64,000 nucleotides of DNA from Rebecca billardiae RCC1528 (lineage: Eukaryota > Protista > Haptophyta). Shown here one piece after another: positions 1-18,760 of this stretch (position 1 is its first letter; every line of letters begins with the position of its first letter). The notes beneath the pieces are model-generated. The model was not told where the DNA came from, ran no database searches, and saw only the letters and a program-made list of their open reading frames with translations. The stretch lies in assembly GCA_965240325.2 (NCBI GenBank), contig OZ251242.1:806001-870000 (forward strand), read 5' to 3'. The position numbers and the translations under genes are program-made.

Positions 1-924
1 AGCGACGGTGGTGCCGTGTACTCCTGTGGGAACAATTATTTCGGCCAGCTGGGCCTGGGCGACAAGGAGACGCGCCGTGTCTTCACCGCGCTGGGCATGA
101 GCAGCATGGGGCTCGTCGTGGGCATCGCCGCTGGTGCATACCACAGCCTCGCGCTCACCGCAGCGGGCGGAGTGTACAGCTGGGGATGGAACGAGGACAG
201 CCAGCACGGTCACGGCGACACTGAGCACCGGCTGGAGCCTGTGCGCATCGAGGCGCTGGACGGTGTGCGAGTGGGCGGCATGTCCGCTGGTTACGGGCAC
301 ACGCTGCTGCTGTCGATGGGCGGTGCTGTGTACTCGTGCGGGTGGGGCGTTCCAGGCTGCCTCGGGCATGGCGACCTGCGCACTCTGCGCACGCCGCAGC
401 GCATCGAGGCGCTCGAGGGCGTGCGCGCCGTGCACGTGAGCGCGGGCGAGAATCACAGCCTGGTGGTGGATGCCACAGGCGGAGTGCACTCGTTCGGGTG
501 GGGGGATTCTGGTCGCCTTGGCCATGGTGACGAGTCCGCCACACTCGTGCCCAGGCGCATCGAGGCGCTGCAGGGCGTGCGCATCGTGCGCGCCTGCGCA
601 GGCTGTGATTGCAGCGCGGTGATGGGCGCGGACGGCAGCGTGTACACGTTTGGCTACAACGAGCGCGGCCAGCTTGGCATCGGCTTAGCTGGTGCAGATC
701 AGCTGCTTCCGGTGCGCGTGCACGCCCCAGCGCACGGCCAGCTGGTGGACTGCTTTCTCGAGGACGGCCAGGCGCTTTGGATCACGTCGGGTTGCGTTGC
801 GCTCTCGTGTGGCAGGCAGTCTGCAGCGCTCGGCCACGGTGTGAGCTTTGACGACGGGATGGACGACCTCGTCTGTCCTGCGCGGATTGCGCAGCTGCCA
901 CCCCTGCGGCGCCGGGGTGCGTAG
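1..924 (+). CDS. RCC1-repeat array gene, copy 0 (5'-truncated by window edge)
   Basis: Open frame from base 1 with RCC1 blades (GxNxxGQLGLGD, IAAGxxHSLAL, VYSWG); same C-terminus LPPLRRRGA* as the other copies. Confidence 0.9.
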   Translation, partial: SDGGAVYSCGNNYFGQLGLGDKETRRVFTALGMSSMGLVVGIAAGAYHSLALTAAGGVYSWGWNEDSQHGHGDTEHRLEPVRIEALDGVRVGGMSAGYGHTLLLSMGGAVYSCGWGVPGCLGHGDLRTLRTPQRIEALEGVRAVHVSAGENHSLVVDATGGVHSFGWGDSGRLGHGDESATLVPRRIEALQGVRIVRACAGCDCSAVMGADGSVYTFGYNERGQLGIGLAGADQLLPVRVHAPAHGQLVDCFLEDGQALWITSGCVALSCGRQSAALGHGVSFDDGMDDLVCPARIAQLPPLRRRGA

Positions 925-1222
925 CACTCGGTGCGCGGTGGCGCGACGGGGCCAAGTCGCAACCGGCCGGCGCGTGCTCGCGGCAGCCGCCGATGGAGAC
1001 GCAGGCGGCGTGTGACGCACGCGAGATGTGTAGTGATGTCTCTGAGCAAACGCGGGTGCTCCGTGCTCCGGCTGCCCGAGTGTCAGGCAACAGCACATAA
1101 CAATGATGCACGCCTTACTACCCTATCAATACTACTACGATACAATCGTAGTCGACGAAATCCGCCGCGCAACGGTCATCGTGAGCACAACGAGGGACGC
1201 GCGCAGGCGAGCTCCGGACGAC

Positions 1223-3055
1223 ATGGAGCCCTCGCGCAAGCGCCCAGCGCTCGCGGACGACGGCGCCGCCGCCGCGTCCCCGGTCTTCGAGGTGCCGTGC
1301 GCGCTATGCGGCGATCGTATTGGCAGCCAGCCTTGGGCGCAGCTCGCGTGCGGCGACGAGCACGTCGCGCACAACGTGTGCCTCTTCCAGCGCGCGCTCG
1401 CGTCCGAGCGCTGCGTCGTGCGGTGCGGCCGGCCGGGGTGCAAGCGCGTGACGAAGGCGGCGTCGGCGAGGACGCAATACGACGGCATTCACGAGCTCGG
1501 CTCTTGGCGGCATATCGACGTGGCGACGTGCACCGGTTGCGCCGCGCTGGATGGGTCGACCGCCATGCAGCGCGAGCCGCCTCCCAGCGACACTGCGGCA
1601 ACGCCGACGATGACAGCTGGACTCACGCTGTGCGACCTGCCGACGGACGTGGTCTCGCGCATCCTCGGCTGGCTCGAGTGCGTGCATGATCTGGCGAGTG
1701 CTAACGCCACGTCGCGCCTCTTCCGCGGCGCGCCCGGCGAACGCTCGCCGGTGGAGCACGCGCTGCGCGAGCGCGCGCGGCGGCGCGGGCACGAGGGCGC
1801 GCTGCCGGCGGCTCTCCCCACTGGCGCGTGCTCGTGGAGGGCGGAGCTGTTCGCGCGCGAGCGTGTGCTGGAGCACGCGGATGCGTATGCGTGCGTGGCC
1901 GTATGCGGCAGCCAAGTCAATGTGCATTGTGCGCTCAGCGCGTTCGTGGATGCATCGGGCGGGCTGCACACGTGCGGTGAGGAGTCTGGTGAGGCGGGGC
2001 TGTGCGCGCCCGCTGCGCTGGGCCATCCGGAGCTGCGCGGCTCAGCCGTCCTCGTGCCGACGCGCGTGGTATCGCTCTCGGCGGTGTGCATGCGTGCGGT
2101 GGCTGCTGGCTATCGACACCTGCTCGCGCTGAGCGACGGTGGTGCCGTGTACGCATGCGGTGAGAATCACCACGGCCAGCTGGGCCTGGGCGACAAGGAG
2201 ACGCGCAGTGTCTTCACCGCGCTGGGCGTAAGCAGCATGGGGCTCGTCGTGGGCATCGCCGCTGGTGGGTCCCACAGCCTCGCGCTCACTGCAGCGGGCG
2301 GTGTGTACAGCTGGGGATGGAACGAGGACAGCCAGCTCGGCCATGGCGACAGTGAGAACCGGCTGGAGCCTGTGCGCATCGAGGCGCTGGACGGCGTGCG
2401 CGTGGGCGGCATGTGCGCGGGCTGGAAGCACACGCTGCTGCTGTCGATGGGCGGTGCCGTGTACTCGTGCGGTGTCGGCGAAGCAGGCGGCCTCGGGCAT
2501 GGCGACGAGCGCACTCTGCGCATGCCGCAGCGCATCGAGGCGCTGGAGGGCGTGCGCGCCGTGCATGTGAGCGCTGGTGATGATCATAGTTTGGTGGTGG
2601 ACGCCACGGGCGGTGTGCACTCGTTCGGGTCTGGCTTGTTGGGCTGCCTTGGTCATGGTGACGACTCCGACGCACTCGTGCCTAGGCGCATCGAGGCGCT
2701 GCAGGGCGTGCGCATCGTGCGCGCCAGCGCGGGCAGCCAGTGCAGCGCGGTGATGGGCGTGGACGGCAGCGTGTACACCTTTGGCGACAACACAAGCGGC
2801 GAGCTCGGCATCGGCTCAGCTGGTGCAGATCAGCTGCTTCCGGTGCGCGTGCACGCCCCAGCGCATGGCCAGCTGGTGGAGTGCTTTCTCGATTACCGCC
2901 AGGCGCTTTGGGTCGCGTCAGACGGCAGCGCGTACTCGTGTGGCAGGCAGTCTGCAGCGCTCGGCCGCGGTGTGATCTCTGACGACGGGATGGACGACCT
3001 CATCTCACCTGCGCGGATTGCGCAGCTGCCACCCTTGCGGCGCCGGGGTGCGTAG
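1223..3055 (+). CDS. RING-like/F-box-like/RCC1-repeat protein, copy 1
   Basis: MEPSRK start shared with paralogues; CxxC..C-x3-H-x2-H-x2-C..C-x4-C cluster; LCDLPTDVVSRILGWL F-box-like motif; RCC1 repeats. Confidence 0.9.
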   Translation: MEPSRKRPALADDGAAAASPVFEVPCALCGDRIGSQPWAQLACGDEHVAHNVCLFQRALASERCVVRCGRPGCKRVTKAASARTQYDGIHELGSWRHIDVATCTGCAALDGSTAMQREPPPSDTAATPTMTAGLTLCDLPTDVVSRILGWLECVHDLASANATSRLFRGAPGERSPVEHALRERARRRGHEGALPAALPTGACSWRAELFARERVLEHADAYACVAVCGSQVNVHCALSAFVDASGGLHTCGEESGEAGLCAPAALGHPELRGSAVLVPTRVVSLSAVCMRAVAAGYRHLLALSDGGAVYACGENHHGQLGLGDKETRSVFTALGVSSMGLVVGIAAGGSHSLALTAAGGVYSWGWNEDSQLGHGDSENRLEPVRIEALDGVRVGGMCAGWKHTLLLSMGGAVYSCGVGEAGGLGHGDERTLRMPQRIEALEGVRAVHVSAGDDHSLVVDATGGVHSFGSGLLGCLGHGDDSDALVPRRIEALQGVRIVRASAGSQCSAVMGVDGSVYTFGDNTSGELGIGSAGADQLLPVRVHAPAHGQLVECFLDYRQALWVASDGSAYSCGRQSAALGRGVISDDGMDDLISPARIAQLPPLRRRGA

Positions 3056-3391
3056 CTGACTCGGTGCGCGGTGCCGGTGGCGCGGGGCCAAGTCGCAACC
3101 GGCTGGCGCGTGCTCGTGGCAGCCGCCGATGGAGACGCAGGCGCGGCGCGTGACGGCACGTGAGCCGTGTATCAATAGTGACGTCAGTGCTCAAGCAAAC
3201 GCGGGTGCTCTGGCTGCCCGAGTAGGCAACAGCACACTGGACGATGATGAACGCCTTACCCCCATAGGCATACGGTTTATAATGCTTATGCTGTACCCGC
3301 CTATCAAAGAGTAGTACAATCGACGAAATCCGCCGCCCAAGCCGAAGGGGATCGTGATCACAACGACCGCGCGCGAGCTCGGGACGACAGC

Positions 3392-5227
3392 ATGATGGAG
3401 CCCTCGCGCAAGCGCTCAGCGCTCGCGGGCGACGGCGCCGCCGCCGCGTCCCCGGTCTTCGATGAGCCGTGCGCACTGTGCGGCGATCGTATTGGCAGCC
3501 AGCCATGGGCGCAGCTCGCGTGCGGCGACGAGCACGTCGCGCACAACGTGTGCCTCTTCCAGCGCGCGCTCGTGTCCGAGCGCTGCGTCGTGCGGTGCGG
3601 CCGGCCGGGGTGCAAGCGCGCGACGAAGGCGGCGTCGGCGAGGACGCAGTTCGACGGCATTCACGAGCTCGGCTCTTGGCGGCATGTCGATGTGGCGACG
3701 TGCACGGGCTGCTCTGCGCCCAACGGGGCGACAGGCGTGCAGCGCGAGCCGCCGCCCAGCCACACGGCGGCAGCACCAACAGAGACGGCAGGCCTCACGC
3801 TGTGTGACCTGCCGACGGACGCGATCTCGCGTATCCTCGGCTGGCTCGAGTGCGCGCATGATCTGGCGCGTGCCAACGCCACGTCGCGCCTCTTCCGCGG
3901 CGCGCCCGGCGAACGCTCGCCGGTGGAGCACGCGCTGCGCGAGCGCGCGCGGCGGCGCGGGCACGAGGGCGCGCTGCCGGCGGCTCTCCCCACGGGCGCG
4001 TGCTCGTGGCGTGCGGAGCTGTTCGCGCGCGAGCGTGTGCTGGAGCACGTGGATGCGCATGCGTGCGTGGCAGTATGCGGCAGCCAAGCCGATGTGCAAA
4101 GTGCGATCAGCGCGTTCGTGGATGGATCGGGCGGGCTGCACACGTGCGGTGAGGAGTCTGGTGAGACCGGGCTGTGCGCGCCCGCTGCGCTGGGCCATCC
4201 GGAGCTGCGCAACTCAGCCGTCCTCGTGCCGACGCGCGTGGCATCGCTCTCGGCGGTGCGCATGCGTGCGGTGGCTGCTGGCTATGGTCACCTGCTCGCG
4301 CTGAGCGACGGTGGTGCCGTGTACGCGTGCGGTGAGAATTATTACGGCCAGCTGGGCCTGGGCGACAAGGAGACGCGCAGTGTCTTTACCGCGCTGGGCA
4401 TGAGCAGCATGGGGCTCGTCGTGGGCATCGCCGCTGGTGGGTCCCACAGCCTCGCGCTCACTGCAGCGGGCGGTGTGTACAGCTGGGGATGGAACCAGGA
4501 CAGCCAGCTCGGCCATGGCGACAGTGAGAACCGGCTGGAGCCTGTGCGCATCGAGGCGCTGGACGGTGTGCGCATGGGCGGCATGTGCGCTGGCTGGAAG
4601 CACACGCTGCTGCTGTCGATGGGCGGTGCCGTGTACTCGTGCGGTGTCGGCGAAGCAGGCCGCCTCGGGCATGGCGACGAGCGCACTCTGCGCATGCCGC
4701 AGCGCATCGAGGCGCTGGAGGGCGTGCGCGCCGTGCACGTGAGCGCTGGTGATGATCATAGTTCGGTGGTGGATGCCACGGGCGGTGTGCACTCGTTTGG
4801 GAAGGACATTGGTGGTTGCCTTGGTCATGGTGACGACTCCGACGCACTCGTGCCTAGGCGCATCGAGGCGCTGCAGGACGTGCGCATCGTGCGCGCCAGC
4901 GCGGGCTGCCAGTGCAGCGCGGTGATGGGCGCGGACGGCAGCGTGTACACGTTTGGCTCCAACGACCACGGCCAGCTCGGCATCGGCTCAGCCGGTGCGA
5001 ATCAGCTGCTTCCGGTGTGCGTGCACGCCCCAGCGCACGGCCAGCTGGTGGACTGCTTTCTCGATTACCGCCAGGCGCTTTGGATCACGTCGGATTGCGT
5101 TGCGCTCTCGTGTGGCAGGCAGTCTGCAGCGCTCGGCCACGGTGTGAGCTCTGTCGACGGGATGGACGACCTCATCTCACCTGCACGGATTGCGCAGCTG
5201 CCGCCCCTGCGGCGCCGGGGTGCGTAG
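3392..5227 (+). CDS. RING-like/F-box-like/RCC1-repeat protein, copy 2 (B-type N-terminus)
   Basis: Intact 611-aa ORF, same architecture. Confidence 0.9.
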   Translation: MMEPSRKRSALAGDGAAAASPVFDEPCALCGDRIGSQPWAQLACGDEHVAHNVCLFQRALVSERCVVRCGRPGCKRATKAASARTQFDGIHELGSWRHVDVATCTGCSAPNGATGVQREPPPSHTAAAPTETAGLTLCDLPTDAISRILGWLECAHDLARANATSRLFRGAPGERSPVEHALRERARRRGHEGALPAALPTGACSWRAELFARERVLEHVDAHACVAVCGSQADVQSAISAFVDGSGGLHTCGEESGETGLCAPAALGHPELRNSAVLVPTRVASLSAVRMRAVAAGYGHLLALSDGGAVYACGENYYGQLGLGDKETRSVFTALGMSSMGLVVGIAAGGSHSLALTAAGGVYSWGWNQDSQLGHGDSENRLEPVRIEALDGVRMGGMCAGWKHTLLLSMGGAVYSCGVGEAGRLGHGDERTLRMPQRIEALEGVRAVHVSAGDDHSSVVDATGGVHSFGKDIGGCLGHGDDSDALVPRRIEALQDVRIVRASAGCQCSAVMGADGSVYTFGSNDHGQLGIGSAGANQLLPVCVHAPAHGQLVDCFLDYRQALWITSDCVALSCGRQSAALGHGVSSVDGMDDLISPARIAQLPPLRRRGA

Positions 5228-5429
5228 CACTCGGTGCGCGGTGGCGCGGGGCCAAGTCGCAACCGGCCGGCGCGTGCTCGCGGCAGCCGCCGATGGAGAC
5301 GCAGGCGGCGCGTGACGGCACGCGAGCCGTGTAGTGATGTCTGTGAGCAAACGCGGGTGCTCCGTGCTCCGGCTGCCCGAGTGTCAGGCAACAGCACATA
5401 ACAATGATGCACGCCTTACCCCAATCAAT

Positions 5430-6754
5430 GGTTGTATAACCGCTCGGTTATGCGGGTATAACTCACCGGTAGCCCTCATGAGGGCGGGCTGGCAGCCAGG
5501 GTCCGGCTGCCTGGAGGTTTTCCGGTCGTCAAGCCGAGCCAGGCCCGGATTGGGCGCGGGCCTGGATTGGCTCAGCAGCTTGGCAAGCCATGCGCGTCTG
5601 GGTGCGGCCGCGCTCGCTGGCTGCACCCGCGGCGCGGCGGCCGGCGTGGCTGCTCTGGTCACCGCTGCGCTGGTGGCTGCTCCTCCTCTGGGAGTTGTTT
5701 CTTCCAGGTGCGTGTGCGTCGGCGGTAGGCCGCCCTCAGCCCTCGCTCTCTCCACTCGTGCACCTGCCCTGCTTGCTCTCTGCTTTCGATGGGGGCGCCT
5801 CGGAGCCGCTTCGAGGCGTCCCCGTCTGCAATCTTCTCATGCTCTATCTGCTTTCGATGGGGGCGCCTCGGAGCCGCTTCGAGGCGTCCCCGTCTGCAAT
5901 CTATCTTCTCATGCTCTGCTTTCGATGGGGGCGCCTCGGAACCGCTTCGAGGCGTCCCCGTCTGCAATCTTCTCATGCTCTGCTTTCAATGGGGGCGCCT
6001 CGGAACCGCTTCGAGGCGTCCCCGTCTGCAATCTTCTCATGCTCTGCTTTCGATGGGGGCGCCTGGGAACCGCTCCCAGGCGTCCCCGTCTGCAATCTTC
6101 TCACGCTTCGCAGTCTCGCTTGCCTTCATCGCCTGGCGGGTGGGTGCTGCTCTCTCCTTCTCTGCCGCCTCCTCTGCAGTCTGCCGTGCACTGCTGTGTG
6201 TGGGATGCGACCTGCTACCTTATCTGACGCTACGCGTGCGTGTCTCGCGCCTGCTTCCCGCCTGCGCCGCCGCCGCCGCGCATGTTTTCGTGCCCACTGT
6301 CTCATGCCGTCTGGATCGTCCTTACTCATACAACCCTGCGGGGAGCCCCTCTGGGCCTCTGCCGCCTTCGGTCCTCGCGCTACCCCTTCGGCGGCCTCGG
6401 CCTCTTCGGGCCCCCGGCCACCACCCCTGCGGGGTGTGGCATTCCACACCTCCTTCTGGGTGGAGGCCCTCGAGGCCTCTGCCTCCTGCGGCGCCGCGCT
6501 CTGCCCAAACTTGCGTTGGGGGGGGGCGTCGGCTGCCAGCGCCTGCGGTCTACGTGCTCCATCGAGTACTTCCTCTTCGGCGTCTAGGCGGTCATCGGCT
6601 TCTGTCGGCGTAGTTGCTCGAATGCATCGGCGAGTCCTTCCTGGTCGGCGTCGCATCCTGGACGGCTTCGGGGGTGTGACCTAGTCACCTCACGCGTTTA
6701 TCAACGCGGCCCCCACCTCAATCTACTCTCATGTGGGTCTACCGAGTGAGTTAT
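5430..6754 (-). mobile_element. Non-autonomous element with asymmetric subterminal inverted repeats and terminal hairpin (Helentron/HINE-like), long copy
   Basis: Absent from other spacers; hairpin ATAACCG-CT-CGGTTAT at 5436-5451; imperfect IR 5458-5482 vs 6728-6754; internal tandem repeats; no clear TSD. Strand inferred from the HINE convention. Confidence 0.65.
5775..6107. repeat. Five 64/68-bp tandem repeats, each a strong hairpin
   Basis: TGCTTTC(G/A)ATGGGGGCGCCT units at 5781, 5849, 5917, 5981, 6045. Confidence 0.9.
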
Positions 6755-7387
6755 GGTTGTATAACCGCTCGGTTATGCGGGTATAACTCACCGGTAGCCC
6801 TCATGAGGGCGGGCTGGCAGCCAGGGTCCGGCTGCCTGGAGGTTTTCCGGTCGTCAAGCCGAGCCAGGCCCGGATTGGGCGCGGGCCTGGATTGGCTCAG
6901 CAGCTTGGCAAGCCATGCGCGTCTGGGTGCGGCCGCGCTCGCTGGCTGCACCCGCGGCGCGGCGGCCGGCGTGGCTGCTCTGGTCACCGCTGCGCTGGTG
7001 GCTGCTCCTCCTCTGGGAGTTGTTTCTCCCTGCCCTCCCACCCTGCTGGTTGCTGGGTGGGCATGGCCTTGGGTGCGCGCGGTGTCGGGGGGGTGGAGGC
7101 CCTCGAGGCCTCTGCCTCCTGCGGCGCCGCGCTCTGCCCAAACTTGCGTTGGGGGGGGGCGTCGGCTGCCAGCGCCTGCGGTCTACGTGCTCCATCGAGT
7201 ACTTCCTCTTCGGCGTCTAGGCGGTCATCGGCTTCTGTCGGCGTAGTTGCTCGAATGCATCGGCGAGTCCTTCCTGGTCGGCGTCGCATCCTGGACGGCT
7301 TCGGGGGTGTGACCTAGTCACCTCACGCGTTTATCAACGCGGCCCCCACCTCAATCTACTCTCATGTGGGTCTACCGAGTGAGTTAT
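6755..7387 (-). mobile_element. Second, internally deleted tandem copy of the same element
   Basis: Both ends match copy 1; the centre (about 5703-6458 equivalent) is replaced by about 65 bp of different sequence. Confidence 0.7.
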
Positions 7388-7481
7388 ACTACTACTACGA
7401 TACAATCGTAGTCGACGAAATCCGCCGCCCAACGGTCATCGTGAGCACACGACCGCGCGCGCAAGGCGAGCTCCGGACGAC

Positions 7482-9311
7482 ATGGAGCCCTCGCGCAAGC
7501 GCTCGCTCGCGGACGACGGCGCCGCCGCCGCGTCCCCGGTCTTCGAGGTGCCGTGCGCGCTGTGCGGCGATCGTATTGGCAGCCAGCCGTGGGCGCAGCT
7601 CGCGTGCGGCGACGAGCACGTCGCGCACAACGTGTGCCTCTTCCAGCGCGCGCTCGCGTCCGAGCGCTGCGTCGTGCGGTGCGGCCGGCCGGGGTGCAAG
7701 CGCGTGACGAAGGCGGCGTCGGCGAGGACGCTATACGACGGCATTCACGAGCTCGGCTCTTGGCGGCATGTCGATGTGGCGACGTGCACCGGCTGCGCCG
7801 CGCTGGATGGGTCGACCGCCATGCAGCGCGAGCCGCCTCCCAGCGACACTGCGGCAACGCCGACGATGACAGCTGGACTCACGCCGTGCGACCTGCCGAC
7901 GGACGTGGTCTCGCGCATCCTCGGCTGGCTCGAGTGCGCGCATGATCTGGCGCGTGCTAACGCCACGTCGCGCCTCTTCCGCGGCGCGCCCGGCGAACGC
8001 TCGCCGGTGGAGCACGCGCTGCTCGAGCGCGCGCGGCAGCGCGGGCATGAGGGCGCGCTGCCGGCGGTTCTCCCCGCGGGCGCGTGCTCGTGGCGGGCGG
8101 AGCTGTTCGCGCGCGAGCGTGTGCTGGAGCACGCGTATGCGCATGCGTGCGTGGCCGTATGCGGCTGCGATTTCGATGTGCAAAGTGCGCTCAGCGCGTT
8201 TGTGGATGCATCGGGCGGGCTGCACACGTGCGGTGAGGAGTCTGGTGAGGCGGGGCTGTGCGCGCCCGCTGCGCTGGGCCATCCGGAGCTGCGCGGCTCA
8301 GCCGTCCTCGTGCCGACGCGCGTGGCATCGCTCTCGGCGGTATGCATGCGTGCGGTGGCTGCTGGCTATCGACACCTGCTCGCGCTGAGCGACTGTGGTG
8401 CCGTGTACGCATGCGGTGAGAATCACCACGGCCAGCTGGGCCTGGGCGACAAGGAGGCGCGCCGTGTCTTCACCGCGCTGGGCATGAGCAGCATGGGGCT
8501 CGTCGTGGGCATCGCCGCTGGTGCATACCACAGCCTCGCGCTCACTGCAGCGGGCGGTATGTACAGCTGGGGATTGAACCACAGCGGCCAGCTCGGCCAC
8601 GGCGACACTGAGTACCGGCTGGAGCCTGTGCGCATCGAGGCGCTGGACGGCGTGCGCGTGGGCGGCATGTCCGCGGGCTGGGGGCACACGCTGCTGCTGT
8701 CGATGGGCGGTGCGGTGTACTCGTGCGGTGTCGGCGACGCAGGCCGCCTCGGGCATGGCGACCAGCGCACTCTGCGCACGCCGCAGCGCATCGAGGCGCT
8801 AGAGGGCGTGCGCGCCGTGCACGTGAGCGCGGGCGAGAATCACAGCCTGGTGGTGGATGCCACAGGCGGTGTGCACTCGTTCGGGTGTGGGGATTGCGGT
8901 TGCCTTGGCCATGGTGACACCTCCGACACACTCGTGCCCAGGCGCATCGAGGCGCTGCAGGGCGTGCGCATCGTGCGCGCCTGCGCAGGCTGTGATTGCA
9001 GCGCGGTGATGGGCGCGGACGGCAGCGTGTACACGTTTGGCTACAACGAGCGCGGCCAGCTTGGCATCTTCTTAGCTGGTGCAGATCAGCTGCTTCCGGT
9101 GCGCGTGCACGCCCCAGCGCATGGCCAGCTGGTGGAGTGCTTTCTCGACTGGCGCCAGGCGCTTTGGGTCGCGTCAGACGGCAGCGCGTACTCGTGTGGC
9201 AGGCAGTCTGCAGCGCTCGGCCACGGTGTGATCTCTGACGACGGGATGGACGACCTCATCTCACCTGCGCGGATTGCGCAGCTGCCACCCTTGCGGCGCC
9301 GGGGTGCGTAG
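7482..9311 (+). CDS. RING-like/F-box-like/RCC1-repeat protein, copy 3
   Basis: Intact 609-aa ORF, same architecture. Confidence 0.9.
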   Translation: MEPSRKRSLADDGAAAASPVFEVPCALCGDRIGSQPWAQLACGDEHVAHNVCLFQRALASERCVVRCGRPGCKRVTKAASARTLYDGIHELGSWRHVDVATCTGCAALDGSTAMQREPPPSDTAATPTMTAGLTPCDLPTDVVSRILGWLECAHDLARANATSRLFRGAPGERSPVEHALLERARQRGHEGALPAVLPAGACSWRAELFARERVLEHAYAHACVAVCGCDFDVQSALSAFVDASGGLHTCGEESGEAGLCAPAALGHPELRGSAVLVPTRVASLSAVCMRAVAAGYRHLLALSDCGAVYACGENHHGQLGLGDKEARRVFTALGMSSMGLVVGIAAGAYHSLALTAAGGMYSWGLNHSGQLGHGDTEYRLEPVRIEALDGVRVGGMSAGWGHTLLLSMGGAVYSCGVGDAGRLGHGDQRTLRTPQRIEALEGVRAVHVSAGENHSLVVDATGGVHSFGCGDCGCLGHGDTSDTLVPRRIEALQGVRIVRACAGCDCSAVMGADGSVYTFGYNERGQLGIFLAGADQLLPVRVHAPAHGQLVECFLDWRQALWVASDGSAYSCGRQSAALGHGVISDDGMDDLISPARIAQLPPLRRRGA

Positions 9312-9577
9312 CTGACTCGGTGCGCGGTGCCGGTGGCGCGGGGCCAAGTCGCAACCGTGAACCGGCTGGCGCGTGCTCGTGGCAGCCGCCGATGGAGACG
9401 CAGGCGCGGCGCGTGACGGCACGTGAGCCGTGTATCATAGTGACGTCAGTGCTCAAGCAAACGCGGGTGCTCTGGCTGCCCGAGTAGGCAACAGCACACT
9501 GGACGATGATGAACGCCTTACCCCCATAGGCATACGGTTTATAATGCTTATGCTGTACCCGCCTATCAAAGAGTAGT

Positions 9578-10371
9578 TTTAAATTCCCCTTTATTATAAC
9601 GGGCTCCGGGTGATCAGGCTGGCGGCCGAAGCCTCCAGCCCTACCCTGGCCAGCCCCCAACCAACCACCACCCTCACCCAACCTCAAACCACTGACCGAG
9701 ACACCTAGTGTCTTGACACCACTCCACTGTGGACAGCCCGCCTCCAGAGGGGGCGGGGGTATGCCATTGCCAACAGCATACGAGCCCAACACTGTGGGGT
9801 GGTCCCAGGTACAAGCAGTGTACGGCCTTGCAATTCAAGATCATCGAGTTTGAGCCGAGTCGGCAGCAGGGGCACCCCCTAGGGTGCCCCAGTGTGGGCA
9901 GAGGGCCAGCCACTAGCCGATCCCTGCGCGGGGAAGGGAACTGAGGGGACTGTCATCGAGCCCAGTAGCTGGGCAGGGGTCTGGGCCACTGGCCCTGGCA
10001 GCGAGGCGCCTGTATTTCACTCGTGCAGCTATGGAGGCAGAGGGGGTCATGTCAGACATGTGTGCTACATCGGGCATCAAGTCCGGGCGCGGGCCGCTGT
10101 AGGAAGCAAGCAAAGTGGTGGCGATGGCTAATACGCCTGGGGAGGTGTCGTTCGCTCGCCTCCGTTCCTGCTGCGCTGTGCAGGGGGTAGCGTGCTCCGC
10201 TGCGGCACATTTGCCTGGCGGGGTGGGCAGTGTCGTTTGGGCGGAGGGCTGTCCTGCTGCGCTTGACTAGGAGGAGGCAGCCCGCGCCTGGGGGCTGCCG
10301 GTGGCCTGGCAGAGCCAGCAGGCGGCTGTGCGGCCTGCTGTCCCGTGTCTGACTGTGTAAGGTCGCTATGA
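9578..10371 (-). mobile_element. 794-bp insertion with TAGT target duplication (possible retroelement-derived fragment)
   Basis: Empty site GAGTAGTACAAT at 3309-3320; TAGT at 9574-9577 and 10372-10375; minus-strand AATAAA at 9590-9595 near one end; no recognisable ORF. Confidence 0.65.
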
Positions 10372-10451
10372 TAGTACAATCGACGAAATCCGCCGCCCAA
10401 GCCGAAGGGGATCGTGATCACAACGACCGCGCGCGAGCTCGGGACGACAGC

Positions 10452-12287
10452 ATGAAGGAGCCCTCGCGCAAGCGCTCAGCGCTCGCGGACGACGGCGCCG
10501 CCGCCGCGTCCCCGGTCTTCGATGAGCCGTGCGCGCTGTGCGGCGATCGTATTGGCAGCCAGCCATGGGCGCAGCTCGCGTGCGGCGACGAGCACGTCGC
10601 GCACAACGTGTGCCTCTTCCAGCGCGCGCTCGCGTCCGAGCGCTGCGTCGTGCGGTGCGGCCGGCCGGGGTGCAAGCGCGCGACGAAAGCGGCGTCGGCG
10701 AGGACGCAGTTCGACGGCATTCACGAGCTCGGCTCTTGGCGGCATGTCGATGTGGCGACGTGCACGGGCTGCTCTGCGCCCAACGGGGCGACAGGCGTGC
10801 AGCGCGAGCCGCCGCCCAGCCACACGGCGGCAGCACCAACAGAGACGGCAGGCCTCACGCTGTGCGACCTGCCGACGGACGCGATCTCGCGTATCCTCGG
10901 CTGGCTCGAGTGCGCGCATGATCTGGCGCGTGCCAACGCCACGTCGCGCCTCTTCCGCGGCGCGCCCGGCGAACGCTCGCCGGTGGAGCACGCGCTGCGC
11001 GAGCGCGCGCGGCGGCGCGGGCACGAGGGCGCGCTGCCGGCGGCTCTCCCCACGGGCGCGTGCTCGTGGCGTGCGGAGCTGTTCGCGCGCGAGCGTGTGC
11101 TGGAGCACGTGGATGCGCATGCGTGCGTGGCAGTATGCGGCAGCCAAGCCGATGTGCAAAGTGCGATCAGCGCGTTCGTGGATGCATCGGGCGGGCTGCA
11201 CACCTGCGGTGAGGAGTCTGGTGAGACCGGGCTGTGCGCGCCCGCTGCGCTGGGCCATCCGGAGCTGCGCAACTCAGCCGTCCTCGTGCCGACGCGCGTG
11301 GCATCGCTCTCGGCGGTGCGCATGCGTGCGGTGGCTGCTGGCTATGGTCACCTGCTCGCGCTGAGCGACGGTGGTGCCGTGTACGCGTGCGGTGAGAATT
11401 TTTACGGCCAGCTGGGCCTGGGCGACAAGGAGACGCGCAGTGTCTTTACCGCGCTGGGCATGAGCAGCATGGGGCTCGTCGTGGGCATCGCCGCTGGTGG
11501 GTCCCACAGCCTCGCGCTCACTGCAGCGGGCGGTGTGTACAGCTGGGGATGGAACCAGGACAGCCAGCTCGGCCATGGCGACAGTGAGAACCGGCTGGAG
11601 CCTGTGCGCATCGAGGCGCTGGACGGCGTGCGCGTGGGCGGCATGTGCGCTGGCTGGAAGCACACGCTGCTGCTGTCGATGGGCGGTGCCGTGTACTCGT
11701 GCGGTGTCGGCGAAGCAGGCCGCCTCGGGCATGGCGACGAGCGCACTCTGCGCATGCCGCAGCGCATCGAGGCGCTAGAGGGCGTGCGCGCCGTGCACGT
11801 GAGCGCGGGCGAGAATCACAGCCTGGTGGTCGATGCCACGGGCGGTGTGCACTCGTTTGGGTCTCACTCGTTTGGTTGCCTTGGCCATGGTGACACCTCC
11901 GACGCACTCGTGCCCAGGCGCATCGAGGCGCTGCAGGGCGTGCGCATCGTGCGCGCCAGCGCGGGCAGCCAGTGCAGCGCGGTGATGGGCGTGGACGGCA
12001 GCGTGTACACCTTTGGCGACAACACAAGCGGCGAGCTCGGCATCGGCTCAGCTGGTGCAGATCAGCTGCTTCCGGTGCGCGTGCACGCCCCAGCGCATGG
12101 CCAGCTGGTGGAGTGCTTTCTCGACTGGCGCCAGGCGCTTTGGGTCGCGTCAGACGGCAGCGCGTACTCGTGTGGCAGGCAGTCTGCAGCGCTCGGCCGC
12201 GGTGTGATCTCTGACGACGGGATGGACGACCTCATCTCACCTGCGCGGATTGCGCAGCTGCCACCCTTGCGGCGCCGGGGTGCGTAG
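10452..12287 (+). CDS. RING-like/F-box-like/RCC1-repeat protein, copy 4 (B-type N-terminus)
   Basis: MKEPSRK start; intact ORF. Confidence 0.9.
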   Translation: MKEPSRKRSALADDGAAAASPVFDEPCALCGDRIGSQPWAQLACGDEHVAHNVCLFQRALASERCVVRCGRPGCKRATKAASARTQFDGIHELGSWRHVDVATCTGCSAPNGATGVQREPPPSHTAAAPTETAGLTLCDLPTDAISRILGWLECAHDLARANATSRLFRGAPGERSPVEHALRERARRRGHEGALPAALPTGACSWRAELFARERVLEHVDAHACVAVCGSQADVQSAISAFVDASGGLHTCGEESGETGLCAPAALGHPELRNSAVLVPTRVASLSAVRMRAVAAGYGHLLALSDGGAVYACGENFYGQLGLGDKETRSVFTALGMSSMGLVVGIAAGGSHSLALTAAGGVYSWGWNQDSQLGHGDSENRLEPVRIEALDGVRVGGMCAGWKHTLLLSMGGAVYSCGVGEAGRLGHGDERTLRMPQRIEALEGVRAVHVSAGENHSLVVDATGGVHSFGSHSFGCLGHGDTSDALVPRRIEALQGVRIVRASAGSQCSAVMGVDGSVYTFGDNTSGELGIGSAGADQLLPVRVHAPAHGQLVECFLDWRQALWVASDGSAYSCGRQSAALGRGVISDDGMDDLISPARIAQLPPLRRRGA

Positions 12288-12509
12288 CTGACTCGGTGCG
12301 CGGTGCCGGTGGCGCGGAGCCAAGTCGCAACCGGCCGGCGCGTGCTCGTGGCAGCCGCCGATGGAGACGCAGGCGGCGCGTGACGGCACGCGAGCCGTGT
12401 AGTGATGTCTGTGAGCAAACGCGGGTGCTCCGTGCTCCGGCTGCCCGAGTGTCAGGCAACAGCACATAACAATGATGCACGCCTTATCCCTATCAATACT
12501 ACTACGATA

Positions 12510-12563
12510 TAGGCTGTCCGACTCTACACCCCCGTAGCCAGCGGAGGGGGGCCGGACAGGCTA
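12510..12563. mobile_element. 54-bp miniature inverted-repeat element
   Basis: TIR TAGGCTGTCCG / CGGACAGGCTA (1 mismatch); 9-bp TSD ACTACGATA at 12501-12509 and 12564-12572; empty site at 1131-1145. Confidence 0.8.
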
Positions 12564-12650
12564 ACTACGATACAATCGTAGTCGACGAAATCCGCCGCCC
12601 AACGGTCATCGTGAGCACACGACCGCGCGCGCAGGCGAGCTCCGGACGAC

Positions 12651-14480
12651 ATGGAGCCCTCGCGGAAGCGCCCAGCGCTCGCGGACGACGGCGCCGCCGC
12701 CGCGTCCCCGGTCTTCGAGGAGCCGTGCGCGCTGTGCGGCGATCGTATTGGTAGCCAGCCGTGGGCGCAGCTCGCGTGCGGCGACGGGCACGTCGCGCAC
12801 AACGTGTGCCTCTTCCAGCGCGCGCTCGCGTCCGAGCGCTGCGTCGTGCGGTGCGGCCGGCCGGGGTGCAAGCGCGTGACGAAGGCGGCGTCGGCGAGGA
12901 CGCAGTACGACGGCATTCACGAGCTCGGCTCTTGGCGGCATGTCGATGTGGCGACGTGCACCGGCTGCGCCGCGCTGGATGGGTCGACCGCCATGCAGCG
13001 CGAGCCGCCTCCCAGCGACACTGCGGCAACGCCGACGATGACAGCTGGACTCACGCTGTGCGACCTGCCGACGGACGTGGTCTCGCGCATCCTCGGCTGG
13101 CTCGAGTGCGCGCATGATCTGGCGCGTGCTAACGCCACGTCGCGCCTCTTCCGCGGCGCGCCCGGCGAACGCTCGCCGGTGGAGCACGCGCTGCGCGAGC
13201 GCGCGCGGCGGCGCGGGCACGAGGGCGCGCTGCCGGCGGCTCTCCCTGCGGGCGCGTGCTCGTGGCGGGCGGAGCTGTTCGCGCGCGAGCGTGTGCTGGA
13301 GCATGCAGATGAGCACGTGTGCGTGGCCGTATGCGGCAGCTACAATGAGGGTCGGGCGTTTAGCGCGTTTGTGGACGCATCGGGCGGGCTGCACACGTGC
13401 GGTGAGGAGCCGGGCGAGGATGAGCCAAACGCGCCCGCTGCGCTGGGCCATCCGGAGCTGCGCGGCTCGGCGGTCCTCGTGCCGACGCGCGTGGCATCGC
13501 TCTCGGCGGTGTGCATGCGTGCGGTGGCTGCTGGCTATCGACACCTGCTCGCGCTGAGCGACGGTGGTGCCGTGTACGCGTGCGGTGAGAATTCTTACGG
13601 CCAGCTGGGCCTGGGCGACAAGCAGGCGCGCCGTGTCTTCACCGCGCTGGGCATGAGCAGCATGGGGCTCGTCGTGGGCATCGCCGCTGGTGGAGACCAC
13701 AGCCTCGCGCTCACCGCAGCGGGCGGAGTGTACAGCTGGGGATGGAACCATTACGGCCAGCTCGGCCACGGCGACACTGCGAATCGGCTGGAGCCTGTGC
13801 GCATCGAGGCGCTGGAGGGTGTGCACGTGGGCGGCATGTCCGCGGGTGGCGGGCACACGCTGCTGCTGTCGACGAGCGGCGCCGTGTACTCATGCGGTGA
13901 CGGCGAAGCAGGCCGCCTCGGGCATGGCGACGAGCGCACTCTGCGCATGCCGCAGCGCATCGAGGCGCTGGAGGGCGTGCGCGCCGTGCACGTGAGCGCG
14001 GGCGAGGATCACAGCCTGGTGGTCGATGCCACGTGCGGTGTGCACTGGTTCGGGTGGGGGGATTGCGGTTGCCTTGGCCATGGTGACACCTCCGCCACAC
14101 TCGTGCCCAGGCGCATCGAGGCGCTGCAGGGCGTGCGTATCGTGCGCGCCAGCGCGGGCTGGATCAGCAGCGCGGTGATGGGCACGGACGGCAGCGTGTA
14201 CACCTTTGGCTACAACGAGCACGGCCAGCTCGGCATCGGCCCAGCTGGTGCAGATCAGCTGCTTCCGGTGCGCGTGCACGACCCAGCGCACGGCCAGCTG
14301 GTGGACTGCTTTCTCGAGTACCGCCAGGCGCTTTGGATCACGTCGGATTGCGTTGCGCTCTCGTGTGGCAGGCAGTCTGCAGCGCTCGGCCACGGTGTGA
14401 GCTTTGACGACGGGATGGACGACCTCGTCTCTCCTGCGCAGATTGCGCAGCTGCCGCCCCTGCGGCGCCGGGGTGCGTAG
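12651..14480 (+). CDS. RING-like/F-box-like/RCC1-repeat protein, copy 5
   Basis: Intact 609-aa ORF; most divergent loop set. Confidence 0.9.
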   Translation: MEPSRKRPALADDGAAAASPVFEEPCALCGDRIGSQPWAQLACGDGHVAHNVCLFQRALASERCVVRCGRPGCKRVTKAASARTQYDGIHELGSWRHVDVATCTGCAALDGSTAMQREPPPSDTAATPTMTAGLTLCDLPTDVVSRILGWLECAHDLARANATSRLFRGAPGERSPVEHALRERARRRGHEGALPAALPAGACSWRAELFARERVLEHADEHVCVAVCGSYNEGRAFSAFVDASGGLHTCGEEPGEDEPNAPAALGHPELRGSAVLVPTRVASLSAVCMRAVAAGYRHLLALSDGGAVYACGENSYGQLGLGDKQARRVFTALGMSSMGLVVGIAAGGDHSLALTAAGGVYSWGWNHYGQLGHGDTANRLEPVRIEALEGVHVGGMSAGGGHTLLLSTSGAVYSCGDGEAGRLGHGDERTLRMPQRIEALEGVRAVHVSAGEDHSLVVDATCGVHWFGWGDCGCLGHGDTSATLVPRRIEALQGVRIVRASAGWISSAVMGTDGSVYTFGYNEHGQLGIGPAGADQLLPVRVHDPAHGQLVDCFLEYRQALWITSDCVALSCGRQSAALGHGVSFDDGMDDLVSPAQIAQLPPLRRRGA

Positions 14481-14777
14481 CACTCGGTGCGCGGTGGCGT
14501 GGAGCCAAGTCGCAACCAGCCGGCGCGTGCTCGCGGCAGCCGCCGATGGAGATGCAGGCGGCGCGTGACGGCACGCGAGCCGTGTAGTGATGTCTCTGAG
14601 CAAACGCGGGTGCTCCGTGCTCCGGCTGCCCGAGTGTCAGGCAACAGCACATAACAATGATGCACGCCTTACTACCCTATCAATACTACTACGATACGAC
14701 AATCGTAGTCGACGAAATCCGCCGCCCAACGGTCATCGTGAGCACACGACCGCGCGCGCAGGCGAGCTCCGGACGAC

Positions 14778-16601
14778 ATGGAGCCCTCGCGCAAGCGCTC
14801 GCTCGCGGACGACGGCGCCGCCGCCGCGTCCCCGGTCTTCGAGGTGCCGTGCGCGCTTTGCGGCGATCGTATTGGCAGCCAGCCGTGGGCGCAGCTTGCG
14901 TGCGGCGACGAGCACGTCGCGCACAACGTGTGCCTCTTCCAGCGCGCGCTTGCGTCCGAGCGCTGCGTCGTGCGGTGCGGCCGTCCGGGGTGCAAGCGCG
15001 TGACGAAGGCGGCGTCGGCGATGACGCAATACGACGGCATTCACGAGCTCGGCCCTTGGCGGCATGTCGATGTGGCGACGTGCACCGGCTGCGCCGCGCT
15101 GGATGGGTCGACCGCCATGCAGCGCGAGCCGCCTCCCAGCGACACTGCGGCAACGCCGACGATGACAGCTGGACTCACGCTGTGCGACCTGCCGACGGAC
15201 GTGGTCTCGCGCATCCTCGGCTGGCTCGAGTGCGTGCATGATCTGGCGCGTGCTAACGCCACGTCGCGCCTCTTCCGCGGCGCGCCCGGCGAACGCTCGC
15301 CGGTGGAGCACGCGCTGCGCGAGCGCGCGCGGCGGCGCGGGCACGAGGGCGCGCTGCCAGCGGTTCTCTCCGCGGGCGCGTGCTCGTGGCGGGCGGAGCT
15401 GTTCGCGCGCGAGCGTGTGCTGGAGCACGCGTATGCGCATGCGTGCGTGGCCGTATGCGGCATCGATGAGCAGTGTGCGTTCAGCGCGTTCGTGGATGCA
15501 TCGGGCGGGCTGCACACGTGCGGTGAGGAGTCTGGTGACACGGGGCTGCGCGCGCCCGCTGCATTGGGCCATCCGGAGCTGCGCGACTCGGCCGTCCTCG
15601 TGCCGACGCGCGTGGCATCGCTCTCGGCGGTGTGCATGCGTGCGGTGGCTGCTGGCTATCGACACCTGCTCGCGCTGAGCGACGGTGGTGCCGTGTACGC
15701 GTGCGGTGAGAATTCTTACGGCCAGCTGGGCCTGGGCGACAAGGAGACACGCAGTGTCTTCACCGCGCTGGGCATGAGCAGCATGGGGCTCGTCGTGGGC
15801 ATCGCCGCTGGTGGGTCCCACAGCCTCGCGCTCACTGCAGCGGGCGGTGTGTATAGCTGGGGATGGAACCAGGACAGCCAGCTCGGCCACGGCGACAGTG
15901 AGAACCGGCTGGAGCCTGTGCGCATCGAGGCGCTGGACGGCGTGCGCGTGGGCGGCATGTGCGCTGGCTGGAAGCACACGCTGCTGCTGTCGATGGGCGG
16001 TGCCGTGTACTCGTGCGGTGTCGGCGAAGCAGGCCGCCTCGGGCATGGCGACGAGCGCACTCTGCGCATGCCGCAGCGCATCGAGGCGCTGGAGGGCGTG
16101 CGCGCCGTGCACGTGAGCGCTGGTGATGATCATAGTTTGGTGGTGGACGTCACGGGCGGTGTGCACTCGTTTGGGGGGGGCTCGTGTGGTTGCCTTGGTC
16201 ATGGTGACGACTCCGACGCACTCGTGCCTAGGCGCATCGAGGCGCTGCAGGGCGTGCGCATCGTGCGCGCCAGCGCGGGCAGCCAGTGCAGCGCGGTGAC
16301 GGGCGTGGACGGCAGCGTGTACATCTTTGGCGACAACACAAGCGGCGTGCTCGGCATCGGCTCAGCTGGTGCAGATCAGCCGCTTCCGGTGCGCGTGCAC
16401 GCCCCAGCGCATGGCCAGCTGGTGGAGTGCTTTCTCGACTGGCGCCAGGCGCTTTGGGTCGCGTCAGACGGCAGCGCGCACTCGTGTGGCAGGCAGTCTG
16501 CAGCGCTCGGCCACGGTGTGAGCTTTGACGACGGGATGGACGACCTCGTCTCTCCTGCGCGGATTGCGCAGCTGCCACCCCTGCGGCGCCGGGGTGCGTA
16601 G
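14778..16601 (+). CDS. RING-like/F-box-like/RCC1-repeat protein, copy 6
   Basis: Intact 607-aa ORF. Confidence 0.9.
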   Translation: MEPSRKRSLADDGAAAASPVFEVPCALCGDRIGSQPWAQLACGDEHVAHNVCLFQRALASERCVVRCGRPGCKRVTKAASAMTQYDGIHELGPWRHVDVATCTGCAALDGSTAMQREPPPSDTAATPTMTAGLTLCDLPTDVVSRILGWLECVHDLARANATSRLFRGAPGERSPVEHALRERARRRGHEGALPAVLSAGACSWRAELFARERVLEHAYAHACVAVCGIDEQCAFSAFVDASGGLHTCGEESGDTGLRAPAALGHPELRDSAVLVPTRVASLSAVCMRAVAAGYRHLLALSDGGAVYACGENSYGQLGLGDKETRSVFTALGMSSMGLVVGIAAGGSHSLALTAAGGVYSWGWNQDSQLGHGDSENRLEPVRIEALDGVRVGGMCAGWKHTLLLSMGGAVYSCGVGEAGRLGHGDERTLRMPQRIEALEGVRAVHVSAGDDHSLVVDVTGGVHSFGGGSCGCLGHGDDSDALVPRRIEALQGVRIVRASAGSQCSAVTGVDGSVYIFGDNTSGVLGIGSAGADQPLPVRVHAPAHGQLVECFLDWRQALWVASDGSAHSCGRQSAALGHGVSFDDGMDDLVSPARIAQLPPLRRRGA

Positions 16602-16810
16602 CACTCGGTGCGCGGTGGCGCGGGGCCAAGTCGCAACCGGCCGGCGCGTGCTCGCGGCAGCCGCCGATGGAGACGCAGGCGGCGCGTGACGGCACGCGAG
16701 CCGTGTAGTGATGTCTCTGAGCAAACGCGGGTGCTCCGTGCTCCGGCTGCCCGAGTGTCAGGCAACAGCACATAACAATGATGCACGCCTTACCCCTATC
16801 AATACTACTA

Positions 16811-16853
16811 ATCACGCCTTAACCAAGTGTGCACGTTAAAACATAGTAAACTG
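16811..16853 (-). mobile_element. 43-bp TA-flanked insertion, probable Tc1/mariner-type terminus remnant
   Basis: Minus strand reads TA-CAGTTTACTATGTTTTAACGTGC; TA on both sides; related sequence at 48745-48773 and 52430-52439. Confidence 0.5.
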
Positions 16854-16939
16854 TACGATACACTCGTAGTCGACGAAATCCGCCGCGCAACGGTCATCGT
16901 GAGCACAACGATCGCCCGCGCAGGCGAGCTCCGGACGAC

Positions 16940-18760
16940 ATGGAGCCCTCGCGCAAGCGCTCGCTCGCGGACGACGGCGCCGCCGCCGCGTCCCCGGTCT
17001 TCGAGGTGCCGTGCGCGCTTTGCGGCGATCGTATTGGCAGCCAGCCGTGGGCGCAGCTCGCGTGCGGCGACGAGCACGTCGCGCACAACGTGTGCCTCTT
17101 CCAGCGCGCGCTCGCGTCCGAGCGCTGCGTCGTGCGGTGCGGCCGTCCGGGGTGCAAGCGCGTGACGAAGGCGGCGTCGGCGAGGACGCTATACGACGGC
17201 ATTCACGAGCTCGGCTCTTGGCGGCATGTCGATGTGGCGAAGTGCACCGGCTGCGCCGCGCTGGATGGGTCGACCGCCATGCAGCGCGAGCCGCCTCCCA
17301 GCGACACTGCGGCAACGCCGACGATGACAGCTGGACTCACGCTGTGCGACCTGCCGACGGACGTGGTCTCGCGCATCCTCGGCTGGCTCGAGTGCGTGCG
17401 TGATCTGGCGCGTGCTAACGCCACGTCGCGCCTCTTTCGCGGCGCGCCCGGCGAACGCTCGCCGGTGGAGCACGCGCTGCGCGAGCGCGCGCGGCGGCGC
17501 GGGCACGAGGGCGCGCTGCCAGCGGTTCTCTCCGCGGGCGCGTGCTCGTGGAGGGCGGAGCTGTTCGCGCGCGAGCGTGTGCTGGAGCACGCGGATGCGC
17601 ATGCGTGCGTGGCCGTATGCGGCATCGATGTGCAGTGTGCGTTCAGCGCGTTCGTGGATGCATCGGGCGGGCTGCACACGTGCGGTGAGGAGTCTGGTGA
17701 CACGGGGCTGCGCGCGCCCGCTGCATTGGGCCATCCGGAGCTGCGCGACTCGGCCGTCCTCGTGCCGACGCGCGTGGCATCGCTCTCGGCGGTGTGCATG
17801 CGTGCGGTGGCTGCTGGCTATCGACACCTGCTCGCGCTGAGCGACGGTGGTGCCGTGTACGCGTGCGGTGAGAATTCTTACGGCCAGCTGGGCCTGGGCG
17901 ACAAGGAGACGCGCAGTGTCTTCACCGCGCTGGGCATGAGCAGCATGGGGCTCGTCGTGGGCATCGCCGCTGGTGGGTCCCACAGCCTCGCGCTCACTGC
18001 AGCGGGCGGTGTGTACAGCTGGGGATGGAACCAGGACAGCCAGCTCGGCCATGGCGACAGTGAGAACCGGCTGGAGCCTGTGCGCATCGAGGCGCTGGAC
18101 GGCGTGCGCGTGGGCGGCATGTGCGCTGGCTGGAAGCACACGCTGCTGCTGTCGATGGGCGGTGCCGTGTACTCGTGCGGTGTCGGCAGAGGAGGCCGCC
18201 TCGGGCATGGCGACCAGCAACCCCTGCGCACGCCGCAGCGCATCGAGGCGCTGGAGGGCGTGCGCGCCGTGCACGTGAGCGCTGGTGATGATCATAGTTT
18301 GGTGGTGGACGTCACAGGCGGTGTGCACTCGTTCGGGCGGCGCTCGTGTGGTTGCCTTGGTCATGGTGACGACTCCGACGCACTCGTGCCTAGGCGCATC
18401 GAGGCGCTGCAGGGCGTGCGCATCGTGCGCGCCAGCGCGGGCAGCCAGTGCAGCGCGGTGATGGGCGTGGACGGCAGCGTGTACACCTTTGGCGACAACA
18501 CAAGCGGCGTGCTCGGCATCGGCTCAGCTGGTGCGAGTCCGCCGCTTCCGGTGCGCGTGCACGCCCCAGCGCACGGCCAGCTGGAGTGCTTTCTCGATTG
18601 GGGCCAGGCGCTTTGGATCACGTCAGACGGCGGCGCGCACTCGTGTGGCAGGCAGTCTGCAGCGCTCGGCCGCGGTGTGAGCTCTGACGACGGGATGGAC
18701 GACCTCATCTCACCTGCGCGGATTGCGCAGCTGCCACCCTTGCGGCGCCGGGGTGCGTAG
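16940..18760 (+). CDS. RING-like/F-box-like/RCC1-repeat protein, copy 7 (last in array)
   Basis: Intact 606-aa ORF. Confidence 0.9.
   Translation: MEPSRKRSLADDGAAAASPVFEVPCALCGDRIGSQPWAQLACGDEHVAHNVCLFQRALASERCVVRCGRPGCKRVTKAASARTLYDGIHELGSWRHVDVAKCTGCAALDGSTAMQREPPPSDTAATPTMTAGLTLCDLPTDVVSRILGWLECVRDLARANATSRLFRGAPGERSPVEHALRERARRRGHEGALPAVLSAGACSWRAELFARERVLEHADAHACVAVCGIDVQCAFSAFVDASGGLHTCGEESGDTGLRAPAALGHPELRDSAVLVPTRVASLSAVCMRAVAAGYRHLLALSDGGAVYACGENSYGQLGLGDKETRSVFTALGMSSMGLVVGIAAGGSHSLALTAAGGVYSWGWNQDSQLGHGDSENRLEPVRIEALDGVRVGGMCAGWKHTLLLSMGGAVYSCGVGRGGRLGHGDQQPLRTPQRIEALEGVRAVHVSAGDDHSLVVDVTGGVHSFGRRSCGCLGHGDDSDALVPRRIEALQGVRIVRASAGSQCSAVMGVDGSVYTFGDNTSGVLGIGSAGASPPLPVRVHAPAHGQLECFLDWGQALWITSDGGAHSCGRQSAALGRGVSSDDGMDDLISPARIAQLPPLRRRGA

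Follow-up and report, generated by a model that had tools for sequence, protein, structure and literature searches.

Tandem F-box-like/RCC1 genes with hypervariable propeller loops in the haptophyte Rebecca billardiae: a probable family of ubiquitin-ligase adaptors

Fast-evolving families of ubiquitin-ligase adaptors are known in nematodes, plants and vertebrates, where a role in defence is suspected, and how marine algae such as haptophytes recognize viruses inside the cell is largely unknown. Here, we have analysed a window of 64,000 nucleotides from the haptophyte Rebecca billardiae RCC1528 (assembly GCA_965240325.2, contig OZ251242.1, forward-strand positions 806,001 to 870,000; all positions below are counted from the start of the window), whose first 18,760 nucleotides carry eight head-to-tail copies of a gene whose product has, in this order, a Cys/His finger, a bundle of F-box-like helices and an RCC1 propeller with seven blades. 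We show that amino acid differences among the copies are concentrated in two short loops per propeller blade and that the copies frequently exchange sequence. The array is a real tandem family of probable SCF-type (Skp1-cullin-F-box) adaptors; selection probably favours diversity on one face of the propeller, which the paralogues reshuffle by exchanging sequence. In the literature, we found no description of F-box/RCC1 arrays whose loops are hypervariable.

Results

Each repeat of the propeller contains four strands, and two classes of loop can be defined from the repeat register: loop X, the four residues that follow the Gly ending the last strand of a blade (strand 4), just before GQLG, and loop Y, the two residues between AG and H, which lie between strands 2 and 3. 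To avoid circularity, the loop codons (n = 42) were set a priori from this register alone in all seven blades. They make up 11% of the propeller codons and account for 41% of the nonsynonymous differences in the propeller; their proportion of nonsynonymous differences (pN) of 0.25 was matched by none of 5000 random block sets drawn within the propeller. The clustering of differences in the loops is far beyond chance.

Every variable patch listed in an initial annotation of this DNA is found as written in the alignment of the copies: YF/HH/YY/FY/SY after G(E/N)N, AY/GS/GD after AAG, EDS/QDS/HSG/HYG after WG(W/L)N, YG/WK/WG/GG after AG, WGVP/VGEA/VGDA/DGEA/VGRG after SCG, EN/DD/ED after SAG, eight variants after FG, CDC/SQC/CQC/WIS after AG, YNER/DNTS/SNDH/YNEH after FG, and a loop of variable length after VAVCG. 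The most variable patch is the X loop of blade 5 (CGDC in copy 4; 8886-8897, + strand), whose 12 nucleotides are different in each of the eight copies, between flanking codons with hardly any differences. Only two 12-nt windows differ in all eight copies, and both cover this loop. The DNA alignment shows that loop codons differ at two or three nucleotide positions, whereas in flanking codons even the silent sites show no difference. The loop residues are enriched in W, Y, N, D, E and S, and the G+C content at third codon positions is 0.65 in the loops against 0.82 in the rest of the propeller, a value equally low in only 1 of 2000 random sets; both features fit with binding residues under fast turnover. 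The X and Y columns are also the most variable among 40 distant homologues (entropy 2.88 versus 1.23, p = 5e-14).

Since at least 31 recombination events (Hudson-Kaplan Rm) within 1.8 kb mean that no single tree applies to these genes, tree-based site models were replaced by pairwise counts on the register-defined codon classes. The ratio of nonsynonymous to synonymous divergence (dN/dS) was 0.44 (0.35-0.56) in the scaffold and 0.28 in the finger, indicating that the genes are under constraint. The loops have a dN of 0.30, which is 3.0 times the scaffold dS (bootstrap 2.0-4.3) and 2.06 times (1.23-3.8) the dS of codons within three positions. In four non-overlapping pairs of copies, loop pN exceeded the proportion of synonymous differences (pS) of the scaffold in 4 of 4 (pooled 3.7-fold, p = 3e-17), and the comparison of loops with their immediate flanks gave a 1.9-fold excess (p = 0.001). 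The non-coding 3′ flanks, taken as a neutral proxy, diverge by 5%, so the silent sites are not unusually slow.

The copies are mosaics of one another. The nearest neighbour of a copy shifts along the gene, as in copy 5, which is closest to copy 3 until two thirds of the way along and to copy 2 towards the end. The four-gamete test was failed by 47% of informative site pairs, and a permutation test modelled on the pairwise homoplasy index (PHI) gave p = 0.001. Together with the Rm value, these statistics demonstrate that exchange between copies is frequent, keeping the scaffold similar and reshuffling the loop alleles.

That the variable domain is a propeller, as initially annotated, was borne out by profile and fold searches. 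The propeller of copy 4, the reference for structure modelling, spans residues 223-598 (8148-9275, + strand) and matches the Pfam RCC1-like domain at 6e-70, with 237 bits for PF25390 (cut-off 150) and 212 bits for PF00415 over six stretches. Its AlphaFold2 (AF2) model has a mean predicted local distance difference test (pLDDT) score of 78.5, with 28 strands in residues 225-597; block-mean pLDDT is above 90 for most of residues 281-520 and lower in blades 1 and 7. Among solved structures, the nearest is that of the plant photoreceptor UVR8 (4e-82; Foldseek template modelling (TM) score 0.78, root-mean-square deviation 2.0 over 384 residues). The predicted identity as a seven-bladed RCC1-like propeller is solid.

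Loops that are two strands apart in an up-and-down sheet share a face, so all variable patches are expected on the same face of the propeller, as had been proposed. We compared their registers with the residues that form the dimer, RUP2 and COP1 interfaces of UVR8, namely R41, E43, D44, D77, D96, D129, W233, R234, W285, R286, K304, W337, R338 and R354 (PMC9860181). In the alignment to UVR8 chain 8gqe_B, numbering is offset by +10, which was verified at the W285A site, and every one of these interface residues maps to an X or Y register. The comparison supports a model in which the variable loops lie on one propeller face and match the registers that UVR8 uses to bind its partners. Among metagenomic homologues of the propeller, three (P0011, P0110 and P0118) carry a U-box (PF04564) or BTB (PF00651) domain instead of an F-box, and hence propellers of this kind occur with different ubiquitin-ligase modules. 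The homologue in E. huxleyi (P0050) is a lone gene at its locus, with no array.

The F-box-like segment of copy 4 (7881-8006, + strand; residues 134-175, LP-x-D-V-V...SRLF) is followed by a helical linker that runs to residue 222. It keeps the canonical signature LP-x-(E/D)-hydrophobic ... (S/C)-(R/K)-x-(W/F), here as LP-x-D-hydrophobic ... SRLF, and AF2 predicts three helices with pLDDT of 71-89. Of 17 aligned family members, 14 match PF12937 (best 3.8e-8) and 5 match PF00646. When the family profile was searched against the PDB, 13 of the 14 matches at E ≤ 1 were F-box proteins, the best being FBXO22 (1.4e-3), and FBXW7, FBXO31, GID2, cyclin F, AnkB and FBH1 were among the others. These sequence profiles point to the segment as a probable F-box.

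The Cys/His finger of copy 4 (7554-7697, + strand; residues 25-72) has the pattern C-x2-C-x13-C-x3-H-x2-H-x2-C-x14-C-x4-C, and its ligands are invariant in all seven complete copies. The finger is real and under constraint. Its initial designation as a RING is not supported. Compared with the cross-brace consensus C-x2-C-x9-39-C-x1-3-H-x2-3-H-x2-C-x4-48-C-x2-C, the first six ligands agree with RING-H2, but the final pair is C-x4-C and not C-x2-C. Residues 1-135 match no Pfam family at E ≤ 10, and no RING is among the PDB profile matches of the finger at E ≤ 10. AF2 modelled the finger with a pLDDT of 48 when taken by itself and below 50 within the whole protein, values that do not allow a search for related folds. 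The nearest named language-model clusters are all RING families, yet their similarity of 0.83-0.85 is below the reliable range. What remains of the RING assignment is the C3H2C3-like pattern and this weak resemblance, and the finger is probably a zinc-binding module with a RING-H2-like ligand pattern.

Relatives of the finger are few. An exhaustive HMMER search of 1.84 billion representatives returned one true relative (P0121); a second match, a leucine-rich repeat protein, was spurious. No relative was found in a scan of Joint Genome Institute (JGI) metagenomes. On its contig (Logan contig L001:1405-1809, sample ERR14847151), the true relative is a stand-alone protein of 134 residues from a related organism; it is 51% identical and keeps all ligands. 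By sequence, the finger appears restricted to this lineage, and the stand-alone protein looks like either an array gene lacking F-box and propeller or an ancestral finger gene. It ends in LPPMRRPHA, resembling the LPPLRRRGA with which the array proteins end, and the common tail may be a shared signal or docking motif. In the array, the C-terminal tail AQLPPLRRRGA (the last 11 codons) is invariant in all eight copies.

All eight copies lie on the + strand of a region (1-18760) with about 69% G+C. As judged from the listing of open reading frames (ORFs) and the alignment, seven copies are complete and one is partial. Copy 1 (1-924) consists of the last 307 codons and the stop, the start of the gene lying beyond the window. 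The complete copies are intronless and range from 606 to 611 codons: copy 2 at 1223-3055 (610 codons from MEPSRKR), copy 3 at 3395-5227 (610 codons), copy 4 at 7482-9311 (609 codons), copy 5 at 10452-12287 (611 codons), copy 6 at 12651-14480 (609 codons), copy 7 at 14778-16601 (607 codons) and copy 8, the last, at 16940-18760 (606 codons), beyond which the common 3′ flank stops near 18990. Internal stops occur in none of the eight copies. The initial count of at least eight intact paralogues is thus correct as to copies and lack of internal stops, but only seven can be called complete. To describe their scaffolds as nearly identical at the DNA level was somewhat generous, as pairwise identity is 88-98% for DNA and 82-96% for protein, and the N-terminal part and blade 7 show two-haplotype variation beyond that of the loops. 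That protein identity is lower than DNA identity indicates an excess of amino-acid-changing differences.

The spacers between copies are mostly 297-363 nt long, and two are larger (2254 and 1140 nt). The enlarged spacer between copies 3 and 4 (5228-7481, 2254 nt) contains a 64-bp tandem repeat at 5778-6107 (5 copies, 92% match) and a 28-nt palindromic element in two exact copies (5435 and 6760); a read contig at 7387 also has the latter element as a loose end. About 180 nt after the stop and about 90 nt before the ATG are conserved in the spacers, and the middle differs from spacer to spacer in length and content, as if there had been recurrent insertion at one site. In copies 2 and 5, the variable middle yields in-frame upstream ATGs at 1103 and 10368, which lengthen the ORF. 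Long Arg/Ala-rich antisense ORFs of 391-489 codons lie over the array genes (12606-13856, 14733-16202 and 17189-18364, all − strand) and probably arise as a side effect of the high G+C content of the coding strand.

Elsewhere in the window, we found on the − strand genes for a bicarbonate-transporter family protein (20638-22893), an amidohydrolase (30176-31813), SUMO-activating enzyme subunit 2 (34776-37328) and U2 spliceosomal RNA (56962-57147; 110 bits, full length). The U2 gene marks the DNA as eukaryotic. The ORF for the SUMO-activating enzyme subunit is about 200 residues longer than its relatives, of which the best named ones, about 50% identical, come from the haptophytes Prymnesium and Chrysotila.

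Discussion

The explanation we favour, and hold to be reasonably likely, is that the array encodes paralogous substrate receptors of a cullin-type (SCF-like) ubiquitin ligase whose loops are selected for different binding specificities. Docking on Skp1 would be the task of the F-box-like helices, and the RCC1 propeller would bind its target through one face, as suggested by UVR8. This face would be made of the two short loops of each blade, the four residues after the last strand and the two in the AG-xx-H hairpin. Exchange between the copies, by gene conversion or unequal crossover, keeps the scaffold similar and reshuffles the loop alleles, giving what would be a repertoire of eight or more receptors that differ in their combination of loops. 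From the exchange between copies and the observation that loop codons are more divergent than adjacent silent sites, we infer selection for different binding specificities. The finger could serve in E2 recruitment, in regulation or as a second binding site. Viral or other fast-evolving proteins are one possibility for the targets, and an immune role is put forward as a hypothesis.

Several observations weigh against this explanation. The dN/dS within the loops is 1.10 (confidence interval (CI) 0.69-1.75), not significantly above 1, a value that depends on few silent sites and on multiply-hit codons. The pairwise counts are not phylogenetically independent, and recombination precludes a clean site-model test. 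The surface exposure of the loops is deduced from strand topology and homology to UVR8. The copies in the window score 18.9-23.1 bits against PF12937, below the cut-off of 24.3 in every case, so that the initial assignment of an F-box holds at the level of the family but falls short for the individual copies. The read data consist of 17 short, low-depth Logan contigs from one run and two sister runs, which are mostly spacer, give no evidence of transcription and are uninformative as to the assembly.

Could the loops be merely unconstrained? Under neutral concerted evolution, gene conversion would homogenize the rest of the gene, and the loops would only look hypervariable. Conversion is clearly active, the within-loop dN/dS is compatible with neutrality, and pS is slightly raised beside the loops (0.15 at 1-2 codons versus about 0.09). 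We nevertheless consider this explanation improbable, because pN in the loops exceeds pS in flanking and scaffold codons 2-3-fold and is five times the divergence of the non-coding flanks, and because the loop residues are biased to the set W, Y, N, D, E and S that is typical of binding sites. Moreover, conversion tracts cannot spare 6-12 nt yet homogenize the sequence on both sides unless homogenized loops are selected against; with exchange this frequent, keeping eight different alleles at a 12-nt patch flanked by near-identical sequence would be difficult without such selection. The initial claim of diversifying selection on the patches is thus upheld by the comparison with scaffold and adjacent silent sites, but not by the ratio within the loops. 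Since the latter is not significantly above 1, we regard positive selection on the loops as well supported by the sequence comparisons, not as formally proven.

Another explanation is that the proteins are not ligase adaptors, and that the RCC1 propeller acts alone as a binding module or one resembling a guanine nucleotide exchange factor, for instance in UVR8-like signalling, with the F-box-like helices serving as a structural cap that does not bind Skp1. The F-box score under the Pfam cut-off would agree with it, as would the best structural relative, UVR8, being a receptor and not an E3 component. We find this explanation no easier to accept, as the F-box is supported at family level and retains its canonical signature, and as U-box or BTB modules are found joined to related propellers. 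An assembly artefact, that is, a false tandem expansion of one or a few genes or a stacking of alleles, is very improbable. The short-read contigs of the sole run found do not span the genes, but the copies differ by 2-12% and have their own loops and indels, the spacers vary in length (297-2254 nt) and in their inserts, and the mosaic pattern is orderly. A different matter is what the receptors recognize. Their anatomy would be the same if they recognized endogenous partners, either in non-self recognition during mating, as do the S-locus F-box arrays of plants, or as selfish toxin-antidote or incompatibility genes, and nothing in the window points to a pathogen. A nematode F-box gene, reportedly a selfish toxin-antidote or incompatibility gene, would be a precedent. 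No mating-type or toxin genes were recognized among the ORFs scanned, which cover part of the window, and we think such an endogenous role unlikely, if less so than either neutral loops or a propeller acting alone.

It is conceivable, if rather unlikely on present evidence, that the finger/F-box/RCC1 genes are one branch of a genome-wide system of intracellular recognition in haptophytes, reshuffled by recombination, which uses RCC1 propellers as the variable receptor and sends fast-evolving foreign proteins, such as those of giant viruses, to ubiquitination, with the finger adding a second ligase or a sensor function. If true, algae would have a form of innate-immunity-like system that has not been described in them.

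Parts of this architecture are known from other systems. Animal proteins of the FBXO24 type have an F-box followed by RCC1 repeats, the order in which the F-box-like segment and the propeller stand in the array, and are single-copy and conserved; FBXO24 is absent from the 30 best Swiss-Prot fold matches of the array protein, and no specific relationship was shown. Restriction factors of the TRIM5/TRIM22 type combine a zinc finger with a binding domain that has fast-evolving surface loops and are clustered paralogues, much like the array proteins with their putative zinc-binding finger. Their binding fold is a SPRY domain, unrelated to the RCC1 propeller, and they have a true RING, whereas the finger of the array proteins is only RING-H2-like. 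UVR8 shares the seven-bladed RCC1 propeller and makes its dimer, RUP2 and COP1 contacts at the same two registers that vary in the array. It is, however, a single-copy photoreceptor with conserved Trp and Arg at those positions and has neither F-box nor finger; conversely, the array proteins lack the GWRHT triad of UVR8.

The tandemly expanded F-box families of nematodes and plants are ubiquitin-ligase adaptors, as the array proteins probably are, and positive selection in their substrate-binding domain has been reported (Thomas 2006, as cited in PMC8120010). PMC8120010 also describes purifying selection on the ligase-docking domain of the F-box (FBA/FTH) and MATH-BTB families and proposes a role in defence. 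The array differs in its host, a haptophyte, in the Cys/His finger ahead of the F-box and in having an RCC1 propeller as binding domain, with variation confined to two short loops per blade. The vertebrate ligases HERC5 and HERC6 couple an RCC1-like propeller to ubiquitin-like conjugation, as the array proteins would, and their RCC1-like domain is under positive selection and determines antiviral activity (PMC6002735); HERC3, HERC4 and HERC6 are among the best fold matches of the array protein. HERC proteins have a HECT domain and not an F-box, and comparison of their orthologues shows selection concentrated in blade 1, while in the array it extends over blades 1-6 and is seen among tandem paralogues. 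The array is a compact natural set of putative receptors, with a fixed scaffold and about 30 varying residues on one propeller face, which makes loop-swap, binding and infection experiments straightforward to design, and it would show the RCC1 propeller in use as a diversifiable binding scaffold.

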